A stretch of DNA of 64,000 nucleotides from Macrostomum lignano (taxonomy: Eukaryota), in NCBI GenBank assembly GCA_002269645.1, contig NIVC01000085.1, forward strand, positions 62,001 through 126,000, read 5' to 3'. Below the pieces are notes generated by a model. The model worked only from the letters and a program-made list of their open reading frames with translations. It did no database searches and was not told where the DNA came from. Positions 9,446-58,949 of this stretch are shown here, in pieces (positions within the stretch are counted from its first letter, which is position 1; each line of letters starts with the position of its first letter). Position numbers and translations under genes: made by a program.

Positions 9446-10255
9446 ATGGCTGAGAAAGGTTTGACCGCCAGTGCAGCGCTGCCCAGAGTTTTCAGTACCG
9501 GCAACTTTAAGGAATGGCTGCAGCGTTTCAATGTATGCGCAAAAGTCAACAAGTGGGACACGTGCAAAGCGGAGCGACTGGCCACATTTTTGGATGGCGA
9601 GGCTCTCGTCGTTTATTTGGAACTGTCGGCAGGAGATCAGGCAGACTACGACAAAGTAGTCCAGGCATTGGATGATGCATTCCACCCGAACCGCGAGCAC
9701 TTCGCCGTCATGGAGGCGTTCAAATCAAGGAAGATTTTGTCGAATGAGACTCCACGCATGTATCTTTATGAGTTAAAGAAGATGCTCAAAAGCTCCTCCG
9801 TGGACAACAAAGATGCTCAAGAGGCTCTGCTGTTCCATCAGTTCGTCTGTGGCCTTCCCGAATCCGTGAGCTGGCAGATTCGCGCGGACTCCAGCGTTAA
9901 GACCTCAGAGCAAGCTCTTCAAAAGGCCCAGCTACTGATGCAGCACAGCTCGGCAAGTATCCCAGCAGCAGCGGTGCAACCTCAGTCGAGCCAATCCAGC
10001 GAAGTTCAGGAGCTGCGGGACACTGTGCAGAGTCTGCAGGCATCGGTGAGCACCCTGAGTTCCCAGCTGCAGCAGCTGGCAGCCTGTGGAGTGAGGACGA
10101 GCAGCACAACGAGACCGCAGCACCGTTCGAAGTCTGACATCATCTGCTACAACTGCCACAAGGCCGGCCACATTGCCAGAGATTGCTACAGCAGGCGACA
10201 GCCGGGAAACGCCAGAGGCTGGGGTGTGCGGGCCCGCAACCCCGGCCAGCAGTAA
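9446..10255 (+). CDS. gag: Gypsy Gag, 269 aa
   Basis: ORF directly after the PBS; zinc knuckle CYNCHKAGHIARDC. Confidence 0.9.
   Translation: MAEKGLTASAALPRVFSTGNFKEWLQRFNVCAKVNKWDTCKAERLATFLDGEALVVYLELSAGDQADYDKVVQALDDAFHPNREHFAVMEAFKSRKILSNETPRMYLYELKKMLKSSSVDNKDAQEALLFHQFVCGLPESVSWQIRADSSVKTSEQALQKAQLLMQHSSASIPAAAVQPQSSQSSEVQELRDTVQSLQASVSTLSSQLQQLAACGVRTSSTTRPQHRSKSDIICYNCHKAGHIARDCYSRRQPGNARGWGVRARNPGQQ
10204..10247 (+). promoter_or_regulatory. -1 programmed ribosomal frameshift signal (gag to pol)
   Basis: G_GGA_AAC in the gag frame at 10204-10210, 6-nt spacer, then GC-rich stem GGCTGGGGT(10217-10225)/ACCCCGGCC(10239-10247). The -1 frame is open into the protease. Confidence 0.8.
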
Positions 10256-13200
10256 CTGCGGGCCCAGCAGCAGCGGCTTCAAGGCCGGCGCTCACAGTCG
10301 GCGGGATCTTCGACGGATGCAGCGTCGCGCCCGACCGACTATCGCAGTGTGAGTGCAAGCTTGATGGCAGAAGTGTGAAGGCGCTGTTAGACACCGGAAG
10401 CCAGTGCTCACTAGTTGAGTCCAGCATCCTGACAAAATCCCAGCTCAGACAGGCAACTGCAGCCAGAGTGCAACTTCATTCAGTGAACAAGCAGCCAATT
10501 AGCATAGAACGGCAAATCGAATTGCCACTTACAGTCGGTGGAGTGACAGCCCGGCAATTGTTTTTCGTTGTGTCAGGTTTGGTCTGCCCTGTCATTGTTG
10601 GAGTCGACTTCATCGGCAAGCATAATTTGCAACTGGACTTCACAGGATCTTCACCAGAAGCCGGCCAAGTCTGCAGCACCAGATTCCAGGCTGACACCGA
10701 CGATCCAGTTGACATCGAAGACGCACTCGTCCCGAGTTCAGCTGTGAAGAGTTCGAGTTGCCGACTACCGACGACCCTGATGTACAACGGCTGCTGGTGG
10801 AGTTCAAAGACTTGTTCAAGAAAAAGCCGGGACTAACTCATCTGCAACAGCACCGAATTGTTCTCTCGGATGAAGTACCTGTCCGAGTGCCACCGCGCCG
10901 AATGCCTGTGCATTACCGGGAGAAGGTAGAGCAGCTGATTCAGGAACTGCTGGAGAACGACGTGATAGAGCTGAGCGAAAGTCCGTACGTGGCCCCACCG
11001 GTGTACGTGACAAAGAAGGATGGCAGTCTCCGCCTGACCATAGACTATCGAGAGATCAACAAGAAGACTATTCGCTCTGCACAGGGAATTCCGTTGATGG
11101 AGGAGGCAAGAGATCGAATCGCAGGCAGTTCAGTGTTCTCTGTGTTGGATCTCAATGGAGGCTATTTTCAAATTCCGATGGCAGAAGAAGACAAGCTAAA
11201 AACTGCTTTCTGTCCGGGACCAGGGATGCCGCTGTACCAATTTAAGAGAATGCCCCAAGGTCTGTCGGGGGCCCAAGCACATTCTGCATGCTAATGTCAA
11301 AAGTTTTCAACGGCTGCGATTTCGTCTTCACGTTCTTCGATGACAGCCTCTGCTTCTCAAAGACCAAGTCGGATCATCTGCGGCAACTTCGAGAGACCTT
11401 CGAGCGACTTCGAGCAGCCGGACTGACATTAAGAGGCTCCAAGTGCAAGATCGCGGTACCCGAAGTGACCTTTCTCGGCACACGGTATTCAAAGGATGGT
11501 GCCCAGCCCAGCCAGGAGAAGCTGGAGGCAATTCAGCAGTGGAGAGAGCCGAGGTCAGCCAAGGAGGTGCGTCAGTTCATCGGCCTGTGCAACCAATACC
11601 GACGCCATGTAGCCAACTTCGCTGCCATCGCCGCACCGCTGCACAATCTGACTGGCAAGGGCGTCCCATTTGACTGGACTTCGGAATGCCAGACGGCCTT
11701 CGACGAGCTCAAAAGGTGCCTAATTAGTCCTCCGATCCTGGTGAACCCGGATTTCACTAAGGAGTTCTCAGACTTCACGGATGCCAGTGGCAGCGGAGTC
11801 GGTGCAATTCTGAAGCAAGGCGAGGCGGTGATCGAGTTCTCAAGCCGCGCATTCAATTCAGTTGAGAAGAAATACTCTGCAACAGAAAAGGAGTGCCTGG
11901 CCATCTTGCACGCATTCAAAGTTTTTCGCCACTATCTTCTCGGCAAGCATTTCACGGTGCACACGGATCACTGCCCGCTCACCTACATCGATTCACAGAG
12001 AGTTGACAGCTACGGCAGGCTAGGACGATGGCGTCTGCTGCTTCAAGAGTTCGACTTCACCGTCAAGTACCGAAGAGGCGTTGAGAACACAGATGCTGAC
12101 GCGCTGTCCAGACTGCACGGCCAAGAAGTCGCAGCTACGCAGCTGACTCCGGAAATCGACACTGAAGAGCTCAAAACTGCGCAGCGACATGACCCGGAGC
12201 TCAGCCAGGTGATTCAGGCGATGGACAAGGACGCAGAAATTGCACCCAGATGGCGAGCAGGACCACTGCAGCAACTCGGCAGAATCTGGAAGAAGCTGAA
12301 GCTGGATGATGACGGTGTTCTACTGCGCAAGTTCAATGACCCGGACGGCCTGCGGGAGGTTCCAGTGGTGCCAGCGCGGCTTCGACAACAGTTTTTGACC
12401 AACGCTCACGAAGGTCTGGGAGGTCATTTCGGAGCCGAGAAATGCTACCGCACACTGAAACTGACCGCCTACTGGCCCGGCATGGCTGAAGACATCGTGC
12501 AACACTGCCAGAGTTGTTCTGTCTGTCAGGAGAAGAAAGCGGGCTCGCGGACCAGCGCGCCACTCGGAGAACTGCCAATCGGCTCGCCGTGGGATTCTGT
12601 GGCTATCGACATCGTCAAGGTGGCGCCATCATCGCGCGGCAACAAATACCTGCTGGTGGCTCAGGATCAGTTTTCCAAGTACCTGACGGCCGTGGCGATT
12701 CCTGACCAGACTGCTGAGACTACTGCTCGCGCCTTCCTCTCCATCTGCTCCCAGACTGGACTTCCCCGAGTCATCCACTCCGATCAAGGACCGAATTTCG
12801 AGTCTCAGCTTTTTCAAGACACTCTGCGAGGCCTGGGAGTCACGAAGACAAGAACAACGGCTTACAATCCCAAAGGCAACGGATTAGCAGAGTCAGGCAA
12901 CAAGTCAGTGCTGCAGTTACTCAGGTGTTTCACCGAGCGAGAGAGCGAGTGGGAGGACAAGCTGCCACTGATCCTGCTGTCCTACAATTCCCGGGTGCAC
13001 TGCTCAACACAGCTGCCGCCACTGAAGGTGTTCACCGGGCGCGATCCGAGCCTGCCGGTCATCAGCCAGCAGTCCAGGCGATTCTATGACGTGCGCACCT
13101 ACGCCGACAAGCTCGAGGGCGACCTGCTGCGAATTCGAGAGTTTGTCGAGGAGCATCTGGTGCAGGCGGCTGGCGAGCAAAAGAGCGGCTACGACAGGTC

Positions 13201-13537
13201 GACCGGGCAGCTGCGCACGTTCAGTCCTGGAGACGAGGTTCTGCTGCGCATCGAGCTGAGGGGCTCCAAGCTGGCGCCGTACTGGGAGCCGGGCTGGCAG
13301 GTGCTGTCGCAGCGGGATCTGGTAGTCAAAATTCGAAAGATCGAGAACGGCCGGACCCGCAGGGTGAATGTGAATCGTCTGCGGCCGCGGATCCTGCCAG
13401 TCCCTGACGGAGAGCGCTTCCTGCAGCCGCCCTTTGCGCACGCGGCGCACGGCGGCGATGAGGCGGACGAGGAGCTGCCCCCGAGACGCTACCCGATGCG
13501 TAGGCGGATGCCGGTGGATCGCTATGTGGCCGGTTGA
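10204..13537 (+). CDS. pol: Gypsy Pol (protease-RT-RNase H-integrase), broken here by two 1-bp deletions
   Basis: PR LLDTGS; RT VLDLNGGYFQI and FFDD; RNase H FTDAS, TEKECLAI, HTDH, ADALSR; IN H-x6-H…CQSCSVC, IDIV, SDQGPNF, AESGN. Frame breaks at about 10731 and 11272. Confidence 0.92.
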
Positions 13538-18200: not shown

Positions 18201-22106
<3,906 letters not shown>

Positions 22107-34240: not shown

Positions 34241-35439
34241 CTGTGAGGGAAAGTTAAAATAACTTTTTATAGCCTTCTCTGGTAACGTTAAGCCATGACA
34301 GTACAGTAAGGAATTCAACCACTGTCCTACTACGAGCTATCTGATTGCGACTTGAGAGTATTCTGTCCCCCCACAATGACAAACTGACCTTCCAAGCACT
34401 TGAACTGATGAGCCAGCAGATTTGTCTGTCTTGTGTGTCTGACCATACGCTCGTATATATTCTATATGTACTAATATACATTATAAATTCTAATTCTAAA
34501 TTCTAGTATATTATATATAGTCGAATAGTTTTCCCATAAAAGTTTGAACGCTGACTTGCAAGCAGCCTACTAGGAGTTATCGTACATTGAGAGGGCCACC
34601 GTTCTACACCCACCCCAAAACTTTGCACGCGGGCCAATGAGAATTCTCCCACGGTGAGTTAGGCAAGCCAACCCCTCCCTTTGATTAATGAGCCTCTCGC
34701 TTTTTGATTCAACGACGGCCACCACCCACGGTGTAAGTTAATTTGTGGCTTTATTCACCAGTATCAAGGAGCTTATATAAAGAGCTGGAAAGAAAAGGCT
34801 ATCCTTGTCTTATTTTAAGCATAGGCCTGCATAGAGTATAAATATTTGAGCGCAAGCTTAACGGCTATACTTGGTTATTTTTAATTTGTCTTTAAATACA
34901 GGTAAGTTCAAGGAATCGAATAATTTTAAAGCGAAAATGCCACTGTTTGAATAATTCTTAGTAAAATTCAGTTTTGCTGCAAGCGCACGATATCAAGTTT
35001 TTTCAATGGAATATATTAGATTAATCTTTTAACGAGCGTCATAAGACTTAGCGCCACGTTATTTTTATTGTGATTTTCGCTTGCACAAATTGTGGATGGC
35101 ATTTTGAACTTTAAAACTGTTCGACTTCCTAGAGTCTTACTCTGATAATACGCTTCATAATAACCAATATTTGCTTAGTTATAAGCATATATAGTGAGTT
35201 TTAAGCTATGCGCATTTAGTTATAACAGACTTAGACATTTATTATAGGTGGATATTTACAGTTCATAATAAGCTATATATATATATTTAGTAATAAGCTA
35301 TATATAGTTATTTCTGTCATATCTGTTATCTATCCTAGTGTCTATCTTAGTGTCTGTCTGTCTTACTCCACTTCTCTCCCGTTGTCTCTCCTCTGCTCTC
35401 TCTCCCGTCTTCTTTCCTCTCTTAGTACTCTCATGGCTG

Positions 35440-36000
35440 TTCTCATGCTTTGATCATGTCTTCTTTCTTGCCAATTTGCAGTCCTGAAAGGAATTTGTGT
35501 ATTTTCATCTCCACTGCAGTCTGCAGCAGTTTAACAACAAAGGAAATACGCATTTCTCAGGAGGAAATTTAAAATTCAAGTACTTTTAAGAGAAACCTAA
35601 AATTTCCATGGTGTGACTAATTTAGTAGGGTTGTATTGCATTGCATCGCCTTTTCATAAATCTTTCGCTTTTACAAACCATGCTGAATTCCCTCGATTTG
35701 CCATCCACTGTTAAACTGCTGCAGAGTTTGCCAATACAGAGGACAGTGGTTAGAATTTCTCACTAAACTGTCATGGCTAAACGTAGCCTTTCCACGCGCG
35801 GGGTACACAGAAGGCTATTAAAAAGTTATTCTAAAACACGGTACATTTGCTATGTACATTCAGCCCTATCGCCTGACCCTTCGTCTGGGCTGGGGGAATG
35901 AGTGAGTGAGCGGCAAAAACAACAGAAAAAGCAGACAAACTTCACATGCTTATAGTTTCTTTTTCGGTTGAGTTACAGAGTTGAAACTTCCTATTTCAAC
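35440..36000 (-). mobile_element. Inverted fragment of the same Helitron-like family
   Basis: Reverse complement matches 18740-19300 (e.g. GGGAATGAGTGAGTG, TACATTTGCTATGTACATTCAG). Confidence 0.75.
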
Positions 36001-36502
36001 TTGAAATTAAAACTTAAATATTGAAACTAATCAATCAGCAGCCCTAAGAGGAATTTGTGTATCTCCAGCTCCATCACAGTCTGCGGCAGTGTAACAACCA
36101 AGGAAACATGCATTTTTAGGAGGCCATTTAGATTTAAAAAATTACCTTATGCGAATCTTAATGTTAAAATCTTAATGGCGTAACTAATTTAGTAGGATTA
36201 TATAGCCATCCACTTTTCTCTTTCCCACCGTTTCTAGTGCTCCCAAAGCACACAAATTTTTCCTATACACAAGCAATATACTGAACACAGACCTTTAAAT
36301 CCAGGAGGTTCACCCTGAGTATCTGAGTGACCTGCGAGACAACTAGGAAGAGTAGGCTACTAAAATTAGTATGAGGAGGACATGTGCACTATGGTTTCTA
36401 GACATACACTAGCACCATGTTTTAAGTGACGCAATTCATCATTATGGTTTTAAGATGGTGCGAAAAATGGTTTTTTTCACTCAACTCTGGTTTCTTTTCC
36501 AG

Positions 36503-45060: not shown

Positions 45061-47751
45061 ACAACTTTGGTGGTGTAGTAGGGCATTATTTTAGGAACGG
45101 GAAATTTTGCAGGTTTAAGTATGCTTTTACCCTACTATCAGTAGTTTCAACCCGGGGAAATAATTAGAGCGGGGGTAAGTAGATAAAATTGGGGTTCCTT
45201 TAGAACTACAGAGTAGTTGGGCTCTTGGGAAAGAAAAGTTTGTTGTTGGAGTGTCTTCGAACTTGGAAAATTCACAAGAAAAGCGGTAAGAAGGGGAAAT
45301 AAATAAAAGAATTATAATTTAGGCGTGCACAGAGGTCGAGGAGTCTTGCCTCTAAATCTATAAACCGGGAGTCTTGCCAAACGCACAACAGAAAACTTAA
45401 GTATAGGAACTAATGTAAAACCAAACTTTTGTACAATCAAGTAACTATTTCCGTTTTTTTTATTATTATATTATATTATATTATATTAACTAAATCTAAA
45501 TTGGTGTCCTGACTCAGTTCTTTAAACCTAAAGCTAGAATTAGGGAACAGCAGGAACCTGGTGGCAGCGAAAAGTCTCAACCAGTAGGAAGTAAAATCCA
45601 CTAGTAAGAATCCTTAGCAATACAAACCAGTAGCTTAACCGCGAACCACGCCCATCCCAGTGGCATAACGATGGAATTTTCATAGAGAGCCAAAATGCCT
45701 ATAACAGTACTAACGCTTAACTTTTTCACATTAATAAAAATTAGTTTGCTAGTGTTTTATTGTACTTCTTTAGGTATATTTTATAAGTTTCTATGTTGAT
45801 AATATAGTTTAATAAAAGTTAAACTTAAAAGTTAAAAGATAATAATCTTTGTTTTACTCTACCTGTTTCTAATATTTTTTTCAATTTTTAACATTAATAA
45901 TGTGGTAGGCTGGTCTACCACTGGGGTTCCAGCAACAATTGGCGACTGCGCAACGCCTCTATCTGTTGGTATGATGATTGACGTCACGAGCTGCTCCCCC
46001 AGCTGATTGAGCATTTTCCCTTCGTTGATCCCACCTTTGGTCCATTTGTTGTCCCTTCCTTTGGCTCCACCTTTGTTTTACTGCGTTTCTCCCGGGTTTT
46101 TGTCCCGTTTTCCCACTGGTGTTCCCCATGGTGTTTCACCCGTTGATCTATGTAATTTTTCGTGGGGCCTGTGGGGCATAAAATAACCGATCAGTCTCAA
46201 CTCAAAGAAAGCTTTGAGACCCTTGGCCTTAATGTTCCATAAAACAAAATTTACAGTGGTGGCAGCACTACTTGACTGCTGACAGTAAAAAACCAAGTAC
46301 ATCAACAGATCATGACATTTACAGTGTCTAAAGACTCAATTTGAATGATCGTGCCACTAAAAGACTGCGACTATGATCACGACTACCCTCCCCCGGAATT
46401 GAGGACCCGGAAAATGGAATAACCAAGGAGAAGAATCAGTGCATCAATTCGAGAAATTTTCTGGCTTTACGAGTGTCAAGACAATGCAGGCGGCGATTCA
46501 AACGTGAAATCCACCCCACTTCACTAGTGTTGACTAACAATTCAAATACCCCCAATTCATAAATTTTTCTTCTCCATGCCCACCTTAATAACTACGGCTA
46601 TGGCAATCTACGGAATGTGACAACAACTACCATATTTCTATAGTCGTAGCCATAAGAGCAGCTAGCTACCGTAGGCGTATCTGTAGCTGCCATAGGCACC
46701 TATTTTACCGTATTTGCCGTAGGATCCCATAGCCGTAGCTATGGCTATGGCGAAACACTATTTTGGTCCCACCTACTAGTCTTAGCTTCAAAAGCCAGTT
46801 TGTTACAGTACATGTAGTACTCTCATGGTTGTTTCATTCCGTCGGCTATTTGCTGCATATGACTACTTTGATCATGTCATCTTAATTTCTTGCTAATTTG
46901 CAGCCCTGAGAAGAATTTGTGTAGCTCTGCAGCTTCATGTTACTGCAGCAGTCTAAAAACCTATTACGCTTGTCTTAGAGAGGCATTTAAATTTAATGTG
47001 CCTTGACCCCTTGAGGTACATGTAAAAGTTAAAATTTCCATGATGTGACAAATATAGTAGAAATTGTGATCTACATGTATATGGCTTTTATATAAATTTT
47101 TTACTTTAAAAAACCATGCCAATTGTCTTATGTATTAATTTTTATCTTCCTCATTCACTGTTCTACAGAGTTGTCTATACAGAGGACAGTGGTTAGAACT
47201 TCCCAGTACATGTGTAGAGATAATAACAAAAATGTTTTTTGCCATAAAAATATACATTTCAGATGTAACCCGTGCCAAACTAGTGACAAGATCGATCCAA
47301 TGACATATGGTCAAAGTGGCGACAGAAAATCCAATGACAATGTGTACATTGTACACTCGCATTGCTCGAGTTGTCTCGAGTAGTACTTGAGTAGTGTAGA
47401 GTACTGTACTGTACTTGTACTATAGTGAAAACAGTATCAATTGAATCATTAAATATGGGTAGCATGATTTTAGTAGTAAAAAAATAGTTCAAAAAACTGT
47501 CATGAAATCAAATGCAAACTATTGAAATGGCTATTAGGAATAAATTATAGATAGACAGCCATAAAAATAGTAGTTCCAAGTTATATCTATGGTTTAGCCA
47601 TAAAATAGACAAATTAATTATACTTACGGCTCAGCTGTAATAATAACAATTTTTGACATTTTTATGGCCAGCCGTAAAAATTAGAATTTGGGCTATATCT
47701 ACAGCTCAGCCGTAAAAATAACCACTTCCTATAAGATAAGTGACTAAGCAA

Positions 47752-48048: not shown

Positions 48049-48778
48049 ACTAAGCAAAGGCTAACAATTAAGAAGACAGAGCTAACAGGCCTAGCACACC
48101 TATAAATGTTTATTTATTTTCAAAGAAACAATTATTAAACCTATTGAATAAAAATTAAATTATGGTTTGTTAGCTATAATACATACCATAAGTCATAACC
48201 TAGCCCCTTTATTGGCTTTAACAAGGCTGCTTTAATAAAAACAATTCTTGCTTTGCTTTGGTGCTTAAAAGCCATAAATTAAATAGCCTAGGGCACTTAA
48301 GTCTAAGACAAAAAGATGCATTAATTTTCATGCATTTCTATTCCTAGAGTTCATGCTGCATACTATATAAAGTAATTTATACTGTGTCCACTGTAAAAAT
48401 GGAATGCCTTCGCGAATAAAGCTTCCATACTATCCATAAAGCATCTAGAAATGGCACACAGAAATCAAACTTAACTTACCGTCAAATCCAAAGCTTTAAC
48501 TTCCAAGATGAGTGTAGTCTATATTGACTAGATTTAATCTTATCTCAGCAACGCAACGTCGAATCACGTCCAAAGACCCTTCGCTGGCGCCGATTACATG
48601 TATAGTACCAAGTTAAATGGAGTTGAATTTACCAAGTACAAAAAACTCACTAATCGATAATTTAAAAAACGAGAGCGGACAATTTCTATTGGACGCGGCA
48701 AAAATACCTCTTATTGCTAATTGTGATTCCATGTCACTCACGTTACTGGCTACTCATAGTAAGAAATGCCAAGTTATG

Positions 48779-49530
48779 ACGTATCTGTTTCCCCATAGAT
48801 ATTCGTATTGATATTCAATTTCTAACAAATGCAACAAAATAAACCTACTTGTACAGCTCGGATTTGCTTGAAAATTTACAGAAAAATTATTACACACAAA
48901 ACAAACACCTCTGTGAAACTTCAAGTCCATCAGACCACGCAAAGCGGAATGGCAAGAGTTTTAAAGGTGCTCGTATTTATAATGCATTGTATATGCGCAC
49001 AGTGTATAACATGTATGCTCATTTGCAATACTTGTACAGCTCGGATTTGCATGAAAATTTACAGAAAAATTATTACACACAAAACAAACACCTCTGTGAA
49101 ACTTCAAGTCCATCAGACCACGCAAAGCGGAATGGCAAGAGTTTTAAAGGTGCTCGTATTTATAATGCATTGTATATGCGCACAGTGTATAACATGTATG
49201 CTCATTTGCAATACTTGTACAGCTCGGATTTGCATGAAAATTTACAGAAAAATTATTACACACAAAACAAACATCTTTGTGAAACTTCAAGTCCATCAGA
49301 CCACGCAAAGCGGAATGGCAAGAGTTTTAAAGGTGCTCGTATTTATAATGCATTGTATATGCGCACAGTGTATAACATGTATGCTCATTTGCAATACTTG
49401 TACAGCTCGGATTTGCATGAAAATTTACAGAAAAATTATTACACACAAAACAAACATCTTTGTGAAACTTCAAGTCCATCAGACCACGCAAAGCGGAATG
49501 GCAAGAGTTTTTTTAAGGTGCTCGTATATC
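48779..49530 (+). repeat. Left TIR: ~70-bp terminal segment plus ~3.7 copies of a 183-bp unit
   Basis: TTGTACAGCTCGG recurs with an exact 183-bp period (GTAC at 48851, 49034, 49217, 49400). Confidence 0.93.
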
Positions 49531-50920
49531 GTATATTTATATGATGCACATATAGCTTGCTAGCTCGTAAGCGCGATGCAACGCGAAGTGCAATACCTGC
49601 ATATAGGCCCGTATATTATACATGTTACATGTACCCAGCTCATGCATGCGTGACTGCGAATTATGTCGGCACTGTTTTGGTGAGTATTCCACTCACGTTG
49701 CAAATGTAAAATTCAATTAGCAGAATGTAATTTTCATTGCTATTAATGCAAATAGCTATTGTCCACAAACATTTCTGTTGTTAACCCTATACCAATTCAG
49801 TCTCTGATCGTAGCTGCGTAATAAGTCATAAGTCTGAATTACTAACGCGAGCCAAATATTGCATGTACATGTATAAGCCAGCCCTGTGAAGCGCAGGTGC
49901 CAATTGTAGACTCCTCTTGGCTTGGCACGCAAGCCTAGCACAAAAATAACGCAACATTTGGCCTAATTTCTACACCACTCTATGCAACCGTTGGGATATG
50001 CAGCTTGGGTTAAAAATACAAACTTGTTTCGAAATTTTCAAAGTGCCAGTCGCTGAGAACTTTTGATGTATTTAGTATTACATGTTACGTACATGTGCAT
50101 TTATGTATATGCACGCGTGGTACTTCTAATAACATCAATAAAAGCGTGGACAGTTTTGATGAAATGCATGTAACCAATAAAAAGGTTATAACAGGAATTT
50201 AAATTACAACAAAGATGAATACTTAAATAGATTTACATACAAAATGTACTGAACAGTTCGGCTCATAATCGCTCTATACCAACCATTAGATCGAGCATGT
50301 GTTCCCTAATAATATTACTCTTAGTAGTCATCACGCTGTTGTCAAGCTCTCGATTAAATCGGAGCCACAAAGATCCACTGTGGCGAGAGGTCCTACTTTT
50401 AGTGTAGAAGAGGCCCGATTGAAAACCCTGAGAAGTCCCATGAAAGTTGCAAACTGAACTATATAAATGAGCGCTGCTCCACTCTCTGAAAGAATATCGA
50501 ACACCTGCATGGGCCGCGGTTAGAGCCCCCTGTTTTGTTCGAGTGGGAATGGTTGTTCGCCTGTTCATGTCCATGTCGGTCGATCCCCAATTCGAGTGGT
50601 CCTTAGCATAAATTGATTATATTGCATTCCATGGCTCGTAATCGAACATCTGCATAGGGGGATGAAAAAAGCGGGCGAACAAACAAAAACAACGGGATGG
50701 GAGGGCGGCCATACATATTTTTCTAGTCAGAAAATTAGCAGCAAAAAGCAGCAACCTCACGACCCTTCTGTACATGGAAGATTGGCCGTCGCGACTGCCA
50801 CAGGTGCACTCAGAACCAGATCTAGAGAACCTCTTGCTCCAAAAATAAGGAACTGGAGAGATCCATTTACGAGTAATGGCGACATTCACGTACATGTACA
50901 GTTGTGTAAAAATCAAGTAA

Positions 50921-53900
50921 CTAATGCGAAAACATGTCTTTGCACGTTGCGCAACAAAAACCTGGATCGGTCGACCCTTCGACGCATTCTGTGTGATACC
51001 AACGAAGACAGGAGGGACATTCAATCTAGAAATGAAGGGGTGAGCGAAAATTAACCGCATTATGCTGTAAGCACAACTCGACTGCATATTCGATCGACTG
51101 CATCTTAAGCTGGAGTTCAATCTGTATGACTGCTTTAAGCAATCTGCTTGGCAAAAGTGAAATTCGTAGTTAAAAAAATAAAAAAAGGAAAATTACTCGT
51201 ATTTTACCCAATTTATGCGACGACTAACGCCCGAAGCGTCAGGTTCTGTGTTGCTACAGGCTGAGCACTCTTCCTGCGTTCCTCCATAGCTGTAGGCCTG
51301 GATCACATTCCAGATATACTGTCTGTATCTTCCGAGAGCCGTCGGATTGTTCTTGAACCGGAGACCAGAACCAAGAGCTAATGCCCTAGCGTACAGGCAT
51401 ACAAACACTCCGCAACTATGACCATCAGATTGCATTGTTCTCGACATTGTGGCCAGCTCATATGGCTTCGATGTGCTGCTGGTGAATACCGGAGCGCTTT
51501 GGTCAACAAATGCCATTATTCCATCGGAAGCCAATATGCGGCTAGAAAGTTAACAGAAATTTTACAGATTTGCCACATCAGTACTTAAGTTCACTTTTAT
51601 TTATTCTCTGGACATGTACACAAACTATTGTACTCACTTCCATTTGCGAATTAGAACATGAAACTCTTGCTTCTCTTGCGCATTACGCCGAATCGAATCC
51701 AGCACAAAGACCTTTCGTTCAACGCCGCAAATAACGATCAAGTAAAAATGCCCGCTGTTTAAAATAGGCACAATTATTTGATTCAGGCCCTGCAACATCA
51801 AGAGAGCAAATAATTTTATACCTCAAATTGGTGCATGCGTAAGATTTTCATTGAGAATTCACTACAAGTGTACAAATTTATTTTGCATCAAAAACGACAT
51901 TATTGTTTCATTAACAGAACTTGCCTTCCATCCGAGAGTTCTTCTCAGCAAGTTCTGGACTCCATCGTTGAACTCATCTCCTGATAGATTCAATATGTAG
52001 TAAAAGTCGCCCTCACTTATTACAATCCTTTGGGCGTTGTTCGATGTGATAGCAGTGCAATAGGCCAATAAAATCTATCGCGAGTAATGCAAGAGGGACA
52101 GGAAAAGATAATGGTGAAAATAGGTCATAAGTCAACTGAATTTTCTATTGTAAGTATTTACGTATACTTACTTAAGTATTTATTGTAAGTAAGTAAGTAT
52201 TTATGAAAATACTTACCGTGTAGTCTAACAGGTTGCTTCCCAACAAACTTTGACGATGCTCTTGCGTTACGGGAATATCCGTTCCAGAGCCAGGAAGGGT
52301 GAAGAGAATCTGGCTATTATCGCTTTGCACCGTTCTTCCTTTCTGCCGCGTGCTCCTCTTGCTTTGCCACCTGCTTCTACTGTTATCTGCGGTTCCATTT
52401 TGACTGGAATTTTTATTGGGTCTGTTCCTACCAGCTGTGCATCCCGGAAGTTTTGATTTTGGGTTGCTCTGTTGGGACTGACTGCTACTCTTTTCCGTTT
52501 CGTCAGGATCGGCGACATTAGCAAAATACTGATTGCTACTAGTATCTGAGTATCTTGAACGCTTGCTATTTCTCGACCTTTTTTGCCAACCTTCAGTTGC
52601 AGCTTCTTCTGAGATTGATGACTTCCTTTTTCTGCAAAAACTTGGAGCAGGTACTTTGCTCGAGATGGTGCACTCTGAAACTCTACGAAGTACAAAGGGT
52701 ACATAATTCTCTACGAAGGTACTCAGCCTGGACTTGGTGTTAAATCGACTTTTCACAGAAGAAAACCAACTCTCCACATGAGCATTTGAGTAAAAAGACT
52801 TTGAATTTTTAGCAATCAAATGATTCCATGTAAATATAGCCCATAGAGGGAGGATGGACAGGTATCTAAGCAAGAAAAAGTTTATCAATCGAGGGTTGTA
52901 GAATTCATTATCTGTCAGATGCGAATGACCGGTTTTATGCGCGAGAGTATTTTGAATTGTGGTAAATTCCTTTTTAAAGTATTCGTAGTATGGAGAATTT
53001 TTCAGTATCGCGTCACCTTCCGCGTTCATACTTGCATGATCCTTGTCTTGAAGTATAAATGAGTCTTTGTTGATTGATTCGGAATACTCTGGAACATGGC
53101 CATCTCTCAGAAAATTTGCTACCCTAGTTCTAGCAGCAACGGTTTGCTCGGCATACGGAGATCCAAATATAATAAGCGTGTCCATGATGAAGTTGACGGA
53201 TAGTTTTTGCGTACTGGAATACTGAATTAAAGAAAATAACTTCAAAAATAGCTGACGGCTTCGCTGGTTCAAGGAGTGTTTTTTGCAGTGGTCCGAAATT
53301 GACTTTATAATATGATTGCTACACAGAAAAACGCCATATTGAATCTCGCTAGGGGTGTCCGTAATAAAGTAATTGTAATGCATTTGGATGTACGTTGTCA
53401 CGTCCGTGTGGTGGAAGTCTAAGCATGAATGAATTTGCGCCCATGAAAAGTCGGAAATAAAAAGAATATTTAGGTCAACAGAAAAAGGTGAGTTTACACA
53501 GTGCAGAATTCTATGGCGGAGGAGTTTTAGAAAGTGAGAAATGGATGCAACGTTATGGGAGTCTGTAATCATATTCCCAACTGGCGACGATGGAACAGAA
53601 TCAGTAGCAGTTGTGATGACAGAATAGAGTAGAACAGGATGAGGTGAACAGTTTTTTTCTATTAACGAGCCAGTAGCGTCGATATGCAGCACTGTTGGAG
53701 TACGAGCTGACATAATTGCTCTAAGAAGCTGTATTTCAAGGTTGGACAATAATACAACACGTAGTGGATCTAAACTACGCTCCATTATGACTCCAGGAAA
53801 AATCGGATGCGGATATCGAAGTTTAAAAATGTCTTGTAGACCTCCAAGCTCAACAAAAAGAACAGAGTGTAACCTCTCGTCTTTCTCCATTTTACTTTTT

Positions 53901-54820
53901 AAATTATACATCACAGTTTTGGCTTTGCACGCATCAAAGTTGCACGACAGAATGAATGGTAAATTTTCGATCGCAAGAAAGCGTCTTCTGAATGCTTCAA
54001 CGGCACCGGCCTCTTTTATATCGTCGTAAATTTCACGTTTTTCTGATTCGGTCGTTCTACGAAAACAACTAGCCGTAGCATCTTGATGGTTTAACCTTCC
54101 CGTGATAATAACCTCCCAAGACCATGTTGTTCCGTCAACACGTGGTGGTCTTCTCATTATTAAAGCGTAATTTCTTCTGCATCCTTCAATTTTGCATTCC
54201 GCTCTAATTGTCCAAAAATTCTGCTTACTTTTTCTTGAATTCTGCTTTCGAATGTGATTATAGCCCGTCATCCTCAAACAGCACGTAGCGACTTGTCGCA
54301 TAGCACGGCAAACTGCTTCATTAAGAAAACTTTTTGAAAACGTATACTTTGGTCCAGATTGACTATCTTCCACCGATAGGTTAATTTTGCAGATATCACT
54401 CTCCGATAGTTCGATCCGATTCTCCCCAGTTTCATCAGAACTTTCCTCAACTTCTGGTGGTTGTTCGTTTGACGTCGATTGTGATGAGCTTGTAGCATTC
54501 AAATCTACTTGTACACGCGTTGTTCTCTCTTCTCTATTCTCTGCGTTGCAAAAATCTTCGCTTTTCTGTCCATCGTCGTTTTCTACTATAGGGTCGCTGG
54601 GTTCATAAATCGTTTTATCAGCCTGACGTCTCCCGTTTAACGTTGAATGTTTTTGGCCAGCTGTATTATATGCACGTCTATTTTTCGATCTCTGAGCTTT
54701 CTTTCCTTGGACTTTTCCAGTCGGTTTATTTTTCTTGCTCTTCTGGCTACATGCACTGTTGGAACGTCCTGCAGCATCAGTCGTCTCAGTTGACTGGGGT
54801 ACATGTAGCGACCTATTCAT
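50921..54820 (-). CDS. Mutator-family transposase fused to a Ulp1/C48 cysteine protease and a PHD finger (5 exons, 1114 aa predicted)
   Basis: complement(join(50921..51025,51208..51541,51638..51789,51925..52074,52217..54820)) = 3345 nt, open throughout. Motifs: C-x4-C…H finger, LHIDATG, ISDFSW, LCSNH, FYNP…LPLW, SNAHVESWF; protease LLDYTILLAY, SGHFYL, VLDS, QSDGHSCGVF; PHD CSAC…W|IECPSCLRWYHTECV…CCATC. The ATG at 54820 is an inference. Confidence 0.85.
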
Positions 54821-55499
54821 TAGACCCCAAAGATATACCCGCGATCGCAGTCGGTTTCGAATTTTGAGTGCCCGACATAAGAACACATAAAGTGGTGTAG
54901 AGTGACGAAAGCCAGTTGGAGGAGGATAAATTCTACTGGCTTCTACCAGGACAGATTGAGCCTAAAATAGGAATAACCCATTTAAAATTACGGATAAAGA
55001 TCCAGTTTCGACATTGCATGCATTCAGAAAGTTATGAAACTGCAAATACCTGCTCTTTTGATGGCAGTCCAAAACAGAAAGTTACTAGAATTGTGGTCAG
55101 TACTACGAAGAAAAATACGAGTCCACGAGTCCACATATTTGAAAAATTCAATGGTCAGTTAAGTTATTGCTTATATAGAATCTAGTATTCGTTCAAGAGA
55201 AAATGAGAAAATTTACTTAGAATTGAAATTAAAGAAGCAACTAGTAAGTGGGACGCAGGGACCAAGCGTGCAGGTCTACATTTATCAGAGATTAAACTAA
55301 AAGAGAGGGGTGGGGAGTGTGCTGATAGAAAAATAGGGGTGGGTGCGCGACTAAAGAAAGAGACGATAATAAATAGCCAATCAGAATGCAGCAAGGGAGA
55401 GAGATAGCTGGACAGAGAGGCAAAAAACAGTAAACAGGACGAGTGCACATGAACTGAAGATAGATATAAGAAAGTAGCTACGCAATATAGGTTGTTAGA

Positions 55500-55635
55500 C
55501 TGCTGGAGTGCAGTGGAGCTGGAGATACACAAATTCCTCTCAGGGCTGCAAATTGGAGGAGAAAGAAGAGAGATGAAATGAGGAGAAGAGAGAGTAGAAA
55601 GTAGAGATGAGAGAGATGAGATGAGACAGAGAGAG

Positions 55636-55726
<91 letters not shown>

Positions 55727-57093
55727 AGAGAAGAGATAGATGAGATGGGAGAGAGAGGGAAGAGGAGAAAGTAGAGATGAGAGAGAAGAGAGTAGAGATT
55801 AGAGAGTGGAGAGAGAGGAGAGAGGAGAAAGTAGAGATGAGAGAGAAGAGATTAGAGATTAGAGAGTGGAGAGAGAGGAGAGAAGAGATTGGAAGAGAGG
55901 AGTCATAAGAGGGGAAAGAAAATAGTACAGAGGAGAGATTTGAGAACATATAAGAGTAAAGATAACAGAATAGAGAGTAGAGATGATCGAGAGAGCAGAT
56001 ACGAGAGTGAACAGACGACAGATGGTAGAATAGAGAACAGCGGAGATAGAAGTGATAAGAGAGAATCTATTACAGACACGAAAGCAGAGAGGAGAGACAA
56101 AGGGAGAGAGAGAAGTGGAGTGAGGAAAGAGGAGAAAAGATGGGAGAGAATCGAGAGCAAAAGGGAGAGAGGGGAAAGGGAGAGACAGGGGAGAGGAGAG
56201 GAAAGAGAAGAACGGAGAGGGGAGAGAATATAGTAAGGAGATGAGAGATGGGAGAGCAGAGAACAGAGAGATGAGTGGAGAGATAAGAGCGAGGGAGAGA
56301 GAGATGGAGAGGAGAGGTGAGAGTAGTGGAGGAAGTTGAGAGAGGAGAGATGATAAAAGGAGACTACAGATCAGATAATGAGAGAGAGTATGAGGCAGGA
56401 AAGATATATTACAGAGGATTGAGACGAGAGAGGAGAGAGTAAAGAGATGATAGAAGAGATGAGAGACGAGAGCAGATCGGGGGAGAGTAGAGAGAAGAGA
56501 TCGGAGAGAGGAGAGAAGTGGGAAGTGTCAAGAAAGAGGGGAGAGTGAGGAGTGAGAATTTATACAGAGGGGAGAGAGAATAGAGAGTAGAGAGCAGAGA
56601 TAAATAAGAAGAGATAAGAGAGCAGAAAATAAGAAGAGAAAGGAGAGATGATAAAGCAATGAGAGAGAAGAGAGTAGAAAAACCAAAGAAAGATAAGGAG
56701 AGACAAGAAAAGATCGGGGAGAAGGAAGAAATAAAGGAGAGAGGAAAAAAGAGATGAGATGAGATGGGAGGGAAAGGATGAGAGACGATAGAGAAGAGAG
56801 GAAACAGTAGAGAATTGACTGAAGTTTCAAAGGAATCTAGGGACGTAGGGAGGCGCAGGGACAGAGGCCGGAGTTTGCCAATACTTGTTTTAAGACAGAC
56901 ATTGCCTGACATTCTTGGGCAACACCACAAGCCAACATGTGATTAATGCTTGCCTCAAATTCTAATTTTATACGAACTTATACTCCACTTTTATTTTTAA
57001 CTCTATCCTATAATTATTAACAAGTTCTGTGTTTGAGTATAACTTCATATTCTGGAACACAAGCAAAAGTAGTTCCGGCTGGGATTGGAATTC
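55500..57093 (+). mobile_element. Helitron-family composite fragment with GA-rich tract, nested in the Mutator element
   Basis: TGCAGTGGAGCTG…GGGCTGCAAATTGG, a purine tract, and the 3' segment …GTTTGCCAATAC…AAAAGTAGTTCCGG…GGGATTGGAATTC, all shared with 19225-22072. Confidence 0.75.
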
Positions 57094-57675
57094 ATATACA
57101 ATGCATTATAAATACGAGCACCTTTAAAACTCTTGCCATTCCGCTTTGCGTGGTCTGATGGACTTGAAGTTTCACAAAGATGTTTGTTTTGTGTGTAATA
57201 ATTTTTCTGTAAATTTTCATGCAAATCCGAGCTGTACAAGTGTTGCAAATGGGCATACATGTTATACACTGTGCGCATATACAATGCATTATAAATACGA
57301 GCACCTTTAAAACTCTTGCCATTCCGCTTTGCGTGGTCTGATGGACTTGAAGTTTCACAGAGGTGTTTGTTTTGTGTGTAATAATTTTTCTGTAAATTTT
57401 CATGCAAATCCGAGCTGTACAAGTGTTGCAAATGGGCATACATGTTATACACTGTGCGCATATACAATGCATTATAAATACGAGCACCTTTAAAACTCTT
57501 GCCATTCCGCTTTGCGTGGTCTGATGGACTTGAAGTTTCACAGAGGTGTTTGTTTTGTGTGTAATAATTTTTCTGTAAATTTTCAAGCAAATCCGAGCTG
57601 TACAAGTAGGTTTATTTTGTTGCATTTGTTAGAAATTGAATATCAATACGAATATCTATGGGGAAACAGATACGT
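57093..57675 (-). repeat. Right TIR (inverted copy, ~2.8 units of 183 bp)
   Basis: Reverse complement of the outer part of the left arm; inner part replaced by the Helitron-family fragment. Confidence 0.92.
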
Positions 57676-58949
57676 CAAGTTATGTTACTCTACAAATTTT
57701 CTCATATCTATTTTTATTGAGCTTTAAACATTCCGCAGTTATTAAAACTAACCCAAATTAAATAATAAATAATTTTTCGTACTAACACAATTCCCACTAG
57801 CAAATTTATTACAGTCTTTTTTAATGAAGCCTTTTTAATTGAATATTTTTAGTTCCCCAATGGTTCGCCAAAGTAGATAACTGTTAGGTTACCCTAAAAA
57901 GGGCCGTTTTGAAGATTTTCTATTTGCTCTATAACGAAACGGAGCAATGGCACATAAATTCAAGAAAACGGACTAAACTAAACTTTTGTTGTGCACTACG
58001 GTGCCGGCTCTCACAAGCCTGTTGCTGGCGAGTGGCGAGCCTTGGTAACAGTAATCATATCTAATTAATCATTTATATTTGACAGCGAATTCAAAATTAA
58101 TAGGCTCTAAAACACCAGTAGTAGTATATAGTAAATTAAGAGTTTTAAGTTGTTCGAAGAAAAATTAAGTAAAATCCAGGATCTCCATTCGCCAAGTAAG
58201 AATTTATGCTGTGGCCTTAAAAGGGCCGTTTTAATATTTACTTTGCTTTTAAATTGCTCTGCGGAGCAATGCAGGTACACAAAATTCAAGAACACAGGCT
58301 AAATACTCGTAGTAAAATAGCGTCCGTTTGTGGCTGGCACTAGGAAATTCAATCCCCAGGGACACTCCCCGGGTACCCCTGGGGGGGGGGGGGGAGAATT
58401 TTCATCAACTCTCCCCGGGGAATTGTTTTGGGCCTTCAGGATCCCCGAGAAGAATGGGAAAGGGAAGTACTCAAAGAAACTGATGTAGCAACATTTTAAA
58501 AACTGAGTGTACTTAATTTCAAATTACAATGCATATAGTGGTAAATTAAAAACAGCCTTAATATATATGTACATGTACATGTAACAAGTAGTATAAATTA
58601 AGACGCACACGTCTTTTACCAGTCTAAGGCCCAAGGCCTTTCTACGAGTACTTGTACTGTACGTTTTTGTTCACCGTTAATGTGCAGATTGTTTAGTACA
58701 GTCTAGAGATTGCAAGCATTATAATTGTTTATTTAACAGAAAACCACGGTATAGCTACAACATACGTGGTAATGAAAAAATTGCAACTGCACTTTACGCT
58801 CGTACACAGCTCGAAAATTGCATATATAAACTGTCGATCGAGGATTTTGTGGATGGGGGGGCAGGTTAAGCCAAGAGTTCTACATGTACATGTATATGAC
58901 TAAATTCCTACATGTACATTATTTTGAAAATCAGTGTTGGCAGCGCTCG

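Follow-up and report, generated by a model that had tools for sequence, protein, structure and literature searches.

A 64-kb window of Macrostomum lignano DNA (64,000 nucleotides of contig NIVC01000085.1, assembly GCA_002269645.1, positions 62,001 to 126,000 of the forward strand) contains an element that is very probably a recently inserted, autonomous-looking cut-and-paste DNA transposon of the Rehavkus group, which is either sister to Mutator/MULE or a subgroup of it, with foldback-style ends. Coordinates below count from the first nucleotide of this window, in which the transposon runs from 48779 to 57675. Its one gene, on the minus strand, is predicted to encode a protein in which a DDE transposase is followed by a Ulp1/SENP-like protease of the Pfam family Peptidase_C48 (hereafter C48) and by a PHD finger. 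Judging from the domain order of distant relatives, we also consider it highly likely that the protease and the PHD finger are an ancient, selected part of this transposase lineage and not captured junk.

A fusion of DDE transposase, C48 protease and PHD finger in a foldback-style element related to Mutator had already been proposed from the letters and open reading frames (ORFs) of the window (the sequence-only reading). This architecture is upheld by a Pfam match to C48, by a profile built from the family, and by a match of the predicted fold to solved structures. Recent insertion is indicated by near-identical terminal inverted repeats (TIRs), a perfect target-site duplication (TSD) and an intact reading frame.

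Terminal repeats and insertion site

The transposon is bounded by two copies of the 9-bp sequence CAAGTTATG, identical at 9 of 9 positions, for which the chance of a random match is about 4e-6. A TSD of 9 bp is the value published for Rehavkus. An inverted-repeat tool reports arms at 48777-49361 and 57093-57677 that are 585 nt long and 99% complementary, and a recount gives 4 mismatches in 583 nt, which fall at two positions of a repeat unit, each recurring in two units. Complete TIRs and a 9-bp TSD at these same ends, as the sequence-only reading had described them, are therefore confirmed. Each arm consists of a unique terminus of 67 nt followed by a tandem array that holds 3.7 copies of a 183-bp unit in the left arm and 2.8 copies in the right. 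The TIRs range from 583 to 749 nt and carry subterminal tandem repeats inside them, as described for Rehavkus. The non-coding features of the element are as follows.

48770..48778, no strand: left TSD copy CAAGTTATG, identical to 57676-57684
48779..49527: left TIR, at the 3' end relative to the gene, with the 67-nt unique terminus at 48779-48845 and the 183-bp array at 48846-49527
49528..50920, minus strand: 3' non-coding part, from the stop codon to the left TIR, in which the ORFs have no Pfam match
55489..57088, no strand: GA-rich block of 1.6 kb, flanked by the right TIR and the gene; copy of a genomic repeat family unrelated to the transposon
57093..57675: right TIR, at the 5' end relative to the gene, with 2.8 copies of the 183-bp unit (57093-57607) and a unique terminus
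57676..57684, no strand: right TSD copy CAAGTTATG, identical to 48770-48778

From the stop codon to the left TIR (49530-50920), the gene strand contains neither of the polyadenylation signals AATAAA and ATTAAA. No further copy of the transposon, of its 3' non-coding part or of its TIR unit is present elsewhere in the 64-kb window.

The transposase core and its assignment to Rehavkus

All four transposase motifs quoted in the sequence-only reading are present in the translated protein: LHIDATG at residue 378, ISDFSW at 455, CSNH at 500 and HVESWF at 681. The residues that they supply to the catalytic core (D381, D457, C500-x2-H503 and E683) are conserved across the family alignments. Transposases of Mutator-like elements (MULEs) are characterized by a C/D-x2-H motif between the second Asp and the Glu, and by a Glu motif of the type (S/T)N..VE(N/S)WF..K. 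The core conforms to this signature of DDE residues, C/D-x2-H and Glu motif. Upstream of it lies a Cys- and His-rich region in which C180/C181, C209 and H245 are conserved, with C214 retained in the closest relatives. This region may be a domain of the WRKY/GCM1-like type.

An HMMER scan of 1.84 billion representative sequences recovers 649 relatives of the core at E<=1e-3 and 207 at E<=1e-10. As a reference for family assignment we used the six Rehavkus DDE cores in the supplementary alignment of PMC6446971, with phmmer E-values calculated for a nominal database of 1e5 sequences (Z=1e5). Over residues 378-690, the protein aligns with Rehavkus-1_TC (2.6e-16), Rehavkus-1_HR (7.1e-16) and Rehavkus-3_TC (1e-12). 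The blocks held in common are LHxDATGS, (V/I)(T/S)DFS(F/W)A, LC..H..K, FYNP...L..YL.ILPLW and SNA.VE.WF..VK. Conversely, all 6 of the 6 Repbase Rehavkus cores match the set of relatives of the query, with E-values down to 1.5e-56.

A search of the PDB with the core sequence returned nothing meaningful, and structural comparison was made with an AlphaFold model built on 60 family sequences (predicted local distance difference test, pLDDT, 87.1; predicted template modelling score, pTM, 0.79). The model has an RNase-H-like sheet. Of the catalytic residues, D381 is placed within a strand, D457 immediately behind one and E683 in a helix, with a sizeable insertion made up entirely of helices in between. 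At the N-terminus, a four-stranded sheet bears the conserved Cys and His residues. The best Foldseek match is the ISCth4 transposase of the IS256 family (E 8.7e-5, probability 1.0), followed by Hermes and RAG1; the template modelling (TM) scores are low, at 0.2-0.35, which is no surprise for a model of several domains. The Mutator transposases have their accepted bacterial relative in IS256. The model thus predicts an IS256-like catalytic fold. Because the core is homologous to those of Rehavkus and its fold matches IS256, the label "Foldback/Mutator" given by the sequence-only reading was essentially right as to the Mutator relationship and the foldback-style ends, and the precise name of the group is Rehavkus.

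Three other assignments were considered and rejected. Some Zisupton/KDZ transposons carry Ulp1 domains, but neither the query nor 17 relatives have a KDZ match in Pfam, and the TSD measures 9 bp, not 8 bp. Ginger1 was set aside on the lack of an integrase Pfam match and on a fold closest to IS256 and hAT. An assignment to hAT itself was likewise rejected.

Structure of the gene

The gene is read from one strand, where a 904-codon ORF (52172-54886) is joined to four short exons. The four junctions put forward in the sequence-only reading (52217/52074, 51925/51789, 51638/51541 and 51208/51025) indeed yield a single open frame, which from the first ATG encodes 1114 amino acids. The predicted exons and domains are listed here in the order of the protein.

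55050..55136, minus strand: possible extra 5' exon, with an ATG at 55136 and 29 hydrophobic codons
52217..54820, minus strand: exon 1, with an ATG at 54820, encoding a basic N-terminus, the zinc-binding region, the DDE core and a Ser/Lys-rich linker
54086..54283, minus strand: Cys/His-rich beta-sheet domain, a presumed DNA-binding zinc finger (residues ~180-245)
52751..53689, minus strand: DDE catalytic core with D381, D457, C500-x2-H503 and E683 (residues 378-690)
51925..52074, minus strand: exon 2, N-terminal part of the C48 domain, with the donor of a GC-AG intron
51638..51789, minus strand: exon 3, C48 segment with His932 and Asp949
51208..51541, minus strand: exon 4, C48 half with Gln1006 and Cys1012 and the first two PHD cysteines; site of the Pfam Peptidase_C48 match
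51298..52273, minus strand: Ulp1/SENP-like C48 domain (residues ~850-1050), spread over exons 1-4
50921..51025, minus strand: exon 5, second half of the PHD finger from C1083 to C1108, with the stop codon TAG at 50923-50921
50942..51267, minus strand: C4HC3 PHD finger (residues 1061-1108), split by intron 4

The intron donors are GTAAGT, GCAAGT, GTGAGT and GTAAAA and every acceptor ends in AG, hence one intron is of the GC-AG type. Support for the junctions comes from relatives whose homologous protein was called as a single ORF. In a global alignment, P0002, P0003 and P0004 (995-1212 amino acids) run without gaps through all four junctions, the contexts of which are ...LLDYT|ILLAY..., ...LGWK|GLNQ..., ...KWN|RILAS... 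and ...RINW|IECPSC.... In tblastn searches, the high-scoring segment pairs of P0088, P0076 and P0130 begin exactly at the exon-5 acceptor (51025), and exon 4 is covered by four relatives.

The five-exon frame therefore stands in its open reading and in all four junctions, with two qualifications: the donor of one intron reads GC, and further upstream another exon (55136-55050) is possible, which would be the sixth. The frame of exon 1 is open from 54963, upstream of the ATG at 54820, and a GT..AG intron with its AG at 54964 would join the additional exon in frame at 54963. This exon has no homology support and is tentative.

Retention of intron 1 would end the frame 14 codons past the donor at 52217 (52172-52216), giving a form that comprises the transposase without the protease and the PHD finger. 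Such retention could be a regulatory switch.

The protease domain

The C48 domain reaches 34.9 bits against Pfam Peptidase_C48 (PF02902) when the whole protein is searched and 37.5 bits for the C-terminal fragment, compared with a cut-off of 20.7. A C-terminal family profile made from the query and 14 relatives was searched against solved structures. It matches the complete catalytic domains of SENP1 (1.6e-32), SENP5 (1.4e-28), Ulp1 (2.4e-28) and SENP2 (5.2e-26), whereas the match to the NEDD8-specific SENP8 is only 2e-10 and those to bacterial deubiquitinases are weaker still.

The motifs named for the active site, SGHFY (residue 930), VLDS (947) and QSDGHSCGVF (1006), are where the sequence-only reading had them. 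Within these motifs, the His-Asp-Cys triad (His932, Asp949 and Cys1012) and the oxyanion residue Gln1006 are intact; in the order His932, Asp949, Gln1006 and Cys1012, they align with the HW, DS, Q and C(G) positions of SENP1. None of His932, Gln1006 and Cys1012 varies among 15 sequences whose identity to the query is just 17-25%; the position of Asp949 is Asp in most relatives and Asn in a few.

The PHD finger

The eight ligands of a C4HC3 finger are all present, with C1061 and C1064 encoded before the last intron and C1083, C1086, H1091, C1094, C1105 and C1108 after it. A full PHD finger split by the last intron, as the sequence-only reading had it, is thus what the ligand pattern gives. The corresponding part of the family profile matches the fingers of DPF3, KAT6A, PHF14, ALFIN and BPTF. 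With the single sequence as query, the best matches are weak (E 0.05-1) and comprise KDM5B PHD3, ALFIN-LIKE 1, PHF13, PHF23 and BPTF, fingers that read histone H3 trimethylated at lysine 4 (H3K4me3), a mark of active chromatin. Trp1089 corresponds to the W-x-H tryptophan also found in those readers. Trp1080 provides another aromatic residue, which the closest relatives retain. The residue before the first PHD cysteine is not aromatic, and a full aromatic cage is not evident.

Conservation of the protease-PHD module in relatives

A census of the 150 best representatives identified 27 that reach the catalytic Glu and continue for at least 250 further residues. A C48-like domain is found in 15 of these 27 and a PHD finger in 11; in other relatives, the PHD finger lies at the N-terminus. 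The order transposase-C48-PHD recurs in many relatives that are only 17-26% identical to the query, several of which are uninterrupted single ORFs. Two relatives add an N-terminal OTU domain, P0082 together with a C48-like domain and a PHD finger, and P0127 together with a Pfam C48 match. Furthermore, P0130 has two stretches that match C48 by the family hidden Markov model, and in P0124 C48 domains lie N-terminal to the core. These arrangements suggest that proteases for ubiquitin-like proteins have been recruited repeatedly within Rehavkus-type transposases. That so many of the sufficiently long relatives carry the protease or the PHD finger, and some relatives an OTU domain as well, argues for the removal of ubiquitin-like modifiers as a selected part of how these transposases work.

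An old and recurrent module contradicts both neutral evolution and a one-off capture. Neutral evolution of the C-terminal domains had been named beforehand, in the sequence-only reading, as an outcome that would tell against it, and the deep conservation of the module speaks to the contrary. The other possibility is that the C-terminal exons are neutral host sequence, either gene fragments picked up as Pack-MULEs do or an adjacent host gene mistakenly fused to the transposase. Elements of the Mutator type are known to capture host fragments, and in this gene four introns split the C-terminal part while the transposase occupies one exon. Yet the same domain order is maintained in the relatives described above, with His, Gln and Cys invariant, and all of the exons lie within the TIRs in one common frame. 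Host capture is thereby largely refuted, and we regard it as extremely improbable.

The relatives also bear on a further idea, that the C48 domain acts in cis as a processing protease, as clan CE enzymes of adenovirus, African swine fever virus and poxviruses do, and that it releases the transposase or the PHD finger by cutting after Gly-Gly. This copy has a Gly-Gly pair (residues 1055-1056, YSYGG|TQEEC) precisely where the protease gives way to the PHD finger, and one relative has a weak match to the adenovirus family Peptidase_C5. Self-processing is unlikely because the Gly-Gly before the PHD finger is not conserved in the relatives; moreover, the profile is far closer to the cellular SENP and Ulp1 enzymes than to viral proteases. 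We judge this possibility to be very slight. The interpretation that we favor remains that of a conserved module which works as part of the transposase.

Some relatives appear to be mobile themselves, because copies of the P0002 relative that are 98-99.5% identical occur in at least two places with different flanks. TIRs of P0002 were sought in three contigs (L001, L002 and L003), where only a right end and no inverted partner was found; this right end is located where the flanks of two contigs diverge. In L001 (14208-17143), the transposase gene of the P0002 element is followed on its 3' side by a tandem array of about 15 units of 186 bp. This period is close to that of the 183-bp unit of the window element, and no sequence similarity was seen between the two repeats. 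In P0002 and P0003, Asn occupies the position of the first catalytic Asp (LNATG versus (I/L)DATG). The P0002 copies with Asn may have been mobilized in trans, or may represent one mis-assembled locus, or else the Asp may be dispensable.

A GA-rich repeat within the transposon

The GA-rich block listed above abuts the inner edge of the right TIR, and about 350 bp separate it from the possible upstream ATG. Its tail is identical to 21760-22085 at approximately 85% of aligned columns, and its head matches 19202-19301, 35353-35538, 36032-36099 and 46895-46964. The block is probably a nested copy of another repeat and not part of the design of the family. We rejected the block as a candidate for the minisatellite known from Rehavkus, since both head and tail recur in an independent repeat at other places in the window.

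Members of this GA-rich repeat family in the window are located at 55489-57088, 19202-22085, 35353-35538, 36032-36099 and 46895-46964. About 70 nt are conserved at the head of the family (GGTTGTTAGACTGC...GGGCTGCAAATTGG) and about 300 nt at its tail, which ends ...GGGATTGGAATTC. The family may be SINE-like, a satellite or another kind of transposable element.

Observations that weigh against an intact, functional element

Several observations weigh against the view that this is an intact Rehavkus element whose fusion protein is functional. The sequence-only reading had proposed profile searches for MULE, Peptidase_C48 and PHD domains, and only Peptidase_C48 scores above its threshold. No transposase family in Pfam, MULE included, matches the query or 17 relatives at E<=1, and therefore the placement inside Mutator rests on motifs, fold and literature. 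The PHD finger reaches just 14.3-16.8 bits against Pfam PHD, below the cut-off of 24. The splicing pattern is a predicted one and includes one GC donor, and the true start codon is uncertain. The GA-rich repeat is foreign to the family, separates the 5' TIR from the gene over 1.6 kb, and may affect expression. The element is also a single copy within the window, and its mobility in the host genome is putative.

In the protease, Leu864 and Phe933 replace both SENP tunnel tryptophans in this copy. These residues align with the tryptophans of SENP1 NWL and HW, respectively, which form the Gly-Gly tunnel of the SENP enzymes, and Trp is present at the first position in 10 of 13 relatives and at the second in 9 of 13. 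Since both tryptophans are absent here, neither protease activity nor SUMO specificity is assured for this copy.

Possible functions of the protease-PHD module

We hypothesize that the domains of the fusion protein could cooperate in the following manner. The predicted zinc-finger region would recognize the 183-bp units repeated near the ends, while excision of the element and its reinsertion at a cut staggered by 9 bp would fall to the DDE core. The module of protease and PHD finger would serve as a chromatin-tethered isopeptidase: the PHD finger would dock the transposase on histone H3 tails, and the C48 domain would free chromatin or repair proteins in the vicinity of a ubiquitin-like modifier, letting transposition proceed. 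The modifier would most likely be SUMO, because SENP1, SENP2 and Ulp1 are by far the best matches of the domain.

Such a module might contribute to target choice and repair. The PHD finger would then tether the transposase to open chromatin methylated at H3K4, or activate it there allosterically, in the manner of the RAG2 PHD finger with RAG1, and the protease would remodel SUMO or ubiquitin-like marks on repair or chromatin proteins at the break. Mutator insertions favor the 5' ends of genes, which is a point for this proposal. The PHD finger resembles the H3K4me3 readers named above, with Trp1089 at the W-x-H position and Trp1080 retained in the closest relatives, and a repair-linked role for transposase Ulp1 and OTU domains has been proposed (PMC2836005). 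The PHD matches are weak, however, and with a non-aromatic residue before the first cysteine a complete cage is not apparent. Taken jointly, the PHD and protease parts of this proposal are plausible, though we lean somewhat against them.

Alternatively, the module could counteract silencing, which is the function that the sequence-only reading had envisaged. The PHD-C48 part would be recruited to the chromatin of the transposon itself and would strip SUMO from effector complexes of SUMO-dependent heterochromatin or of the PIWI-interacting RNA (piRNA) pathway, keeping the transposon expressed. Transposon heterochromatin in animals depends on SUMO. The SENP-like character and the conservation of the module speak for this role, and the OTU domain or second C48 domain in some relatives suggests strong selection for removing ubiquitin-like marks. 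Against this, the weak PHD matches (E 0.05-1) are to readers of H3K4me3, a mark that a silenced copy would lack, and both tunnel tryptophans are missing from this copy. We consider this role unlikely, if still worth entertaining, and a role in target choice or repair fits the nearest PHD matches somewhat better.

A broader claim spans these possibilities, namely that Rehavkus transposases carry a working chromatin-tethered deSUMOylase, which would either erase SUMO-dependent silencing or license integration at H3-marked chromatin. As judged from the sequences, this claim is a decidedly long shot. If true, it would mean that transposons encode an enzymatic counter-defence against host silencing in animals, joined in some lineages by OTU or a second C48 domain.

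Relation to known transposons

The sequence-only reading had regarded the parts as known and had left open whether the family is described. The family is indeed described: Rehavkus is in Repbase, from which the core alignment derives, and is placed as a sister group of the MULEs (PMC6446971). Published accounts give Rehavkus elements a single ORF, a PHD finger, a minisatellite, a TSD of 9 bp and TIRs 26-412 bp long, and the group serves as an outgroup or sister to the MULEs. Rehavkus is also discussed in bioRxiv 10.1101/2024.12.02.626372.

Rehavkus is known from arthropods and annelids. Rehavkus-1_TC and -3_TC of Tribolium and Rehavkus-1_HR of Helobdella resemble the window element in the 9-bp TSD, the long repeat-bearing TIRs, the single gene and the PHD finger, and their cores are alignable with it from end to end at low identity. 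The accessible descriptions list only the PHD finger, whereas a Ulp1-like protease is clear here and common among relatives.

The domains themselves have been reported in other transposons. Ulp1 domains occur in MuDR-type transposons of Hydra magnipapillata and Branchiostoma floridae (Repbase Reports 2008/2009, cited in PMC2836005) and in MULEs of Arabidopsis, melon and rice (PMC2836005). As published descriptions have it, these elements of Hydra, lancelet and plants share the Mutator type and the C48 domain with the window element.

Ginger1 transposases have a C-terminal Ulp1 domain together with a PHD finger (Ginger1-9_HM) or an OTU domain, for which a role in transposition or repair has been suggested (PMC2836005). 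A figure in that paper, according to its legend, aligns Ulp1 and PHD domains of Ginger1 and Mutator transposases. The likeness to Ginger1 thus extends to the C-terminal module (Ulp1 with or without PHD, or OTU) and to spliced genes that include a GC-AG intron. The two differ in their cores: Ginger1 has a DDE domain of the retroviral-integrase type with YPYY, H2C2 and GPY/F motifs, while the core in the window is IS256/Mutator-like and the TSD is 9 bp. The TSDs of Ginger1 are contrasted with the 4-bp TSDs of Ginger2 (PMC2836005).

The sequence-only reading stated that Ulp1-like domains occur in some Mutator-like and other DNA transposons, and PMC2836005 bears this out: both Ulp1 and PHD domains had been reported by 2010 for animal transposases of the Mutator type and of Ginger1. 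The element therefore opens no new category; the idea that removing ubiquitin-like modifiers belongs to how such transposases work itself dates from 2006-2010. How often the protease occurs in the Rehavkus family, and that OTU accompanies it, may be under-reported, which would be a refinement. As a clean and apparently intact copy of a poorly studied group, the element could serve as a template for an excision and insertion assay.

More distant likenesses concern structure and function. ISCth4 (PDB 6XGW/6XG8/6XGX) is the best structural match of the core (probability 1.0), with an identity of 10-13% and TM-scores of 0.2-0.35, and it lacks the eukaryotic accessory domains. RAG1, which is among the weaker fold matches, is a DDE recombinase derived from Transib that works with the PHD finger of RAG2. 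The parallel with RAG1/RAG2 is a functional analogy only, for these proteins belong to another superfamily, carry the PHD finger on a separate subunit, and have no protease. With the Drosophila Foldback (FB) element, the likeness is limited to the foldback-like architecture of the ends.

Other features of the window

Two further features of the window lie outside the transposon. On the plus strand, a run of ORFs at 9446-13537 reads by eye, from its translations, as a Ty3/gypsy-type long terminal repeat retrotransposon, with a gag that includes a CCHC knuckle, a DTGS protease, a reverse transcriptase and an integrase; it is broken over at least four frames. Also on the plus strand, an ORF of 345 amino acids at 1798-2835 encodes a glutamine synthetase catalytic domain (Pfam Gln-synt_C, 1.3e-75) and is probably an exon of a host gene.

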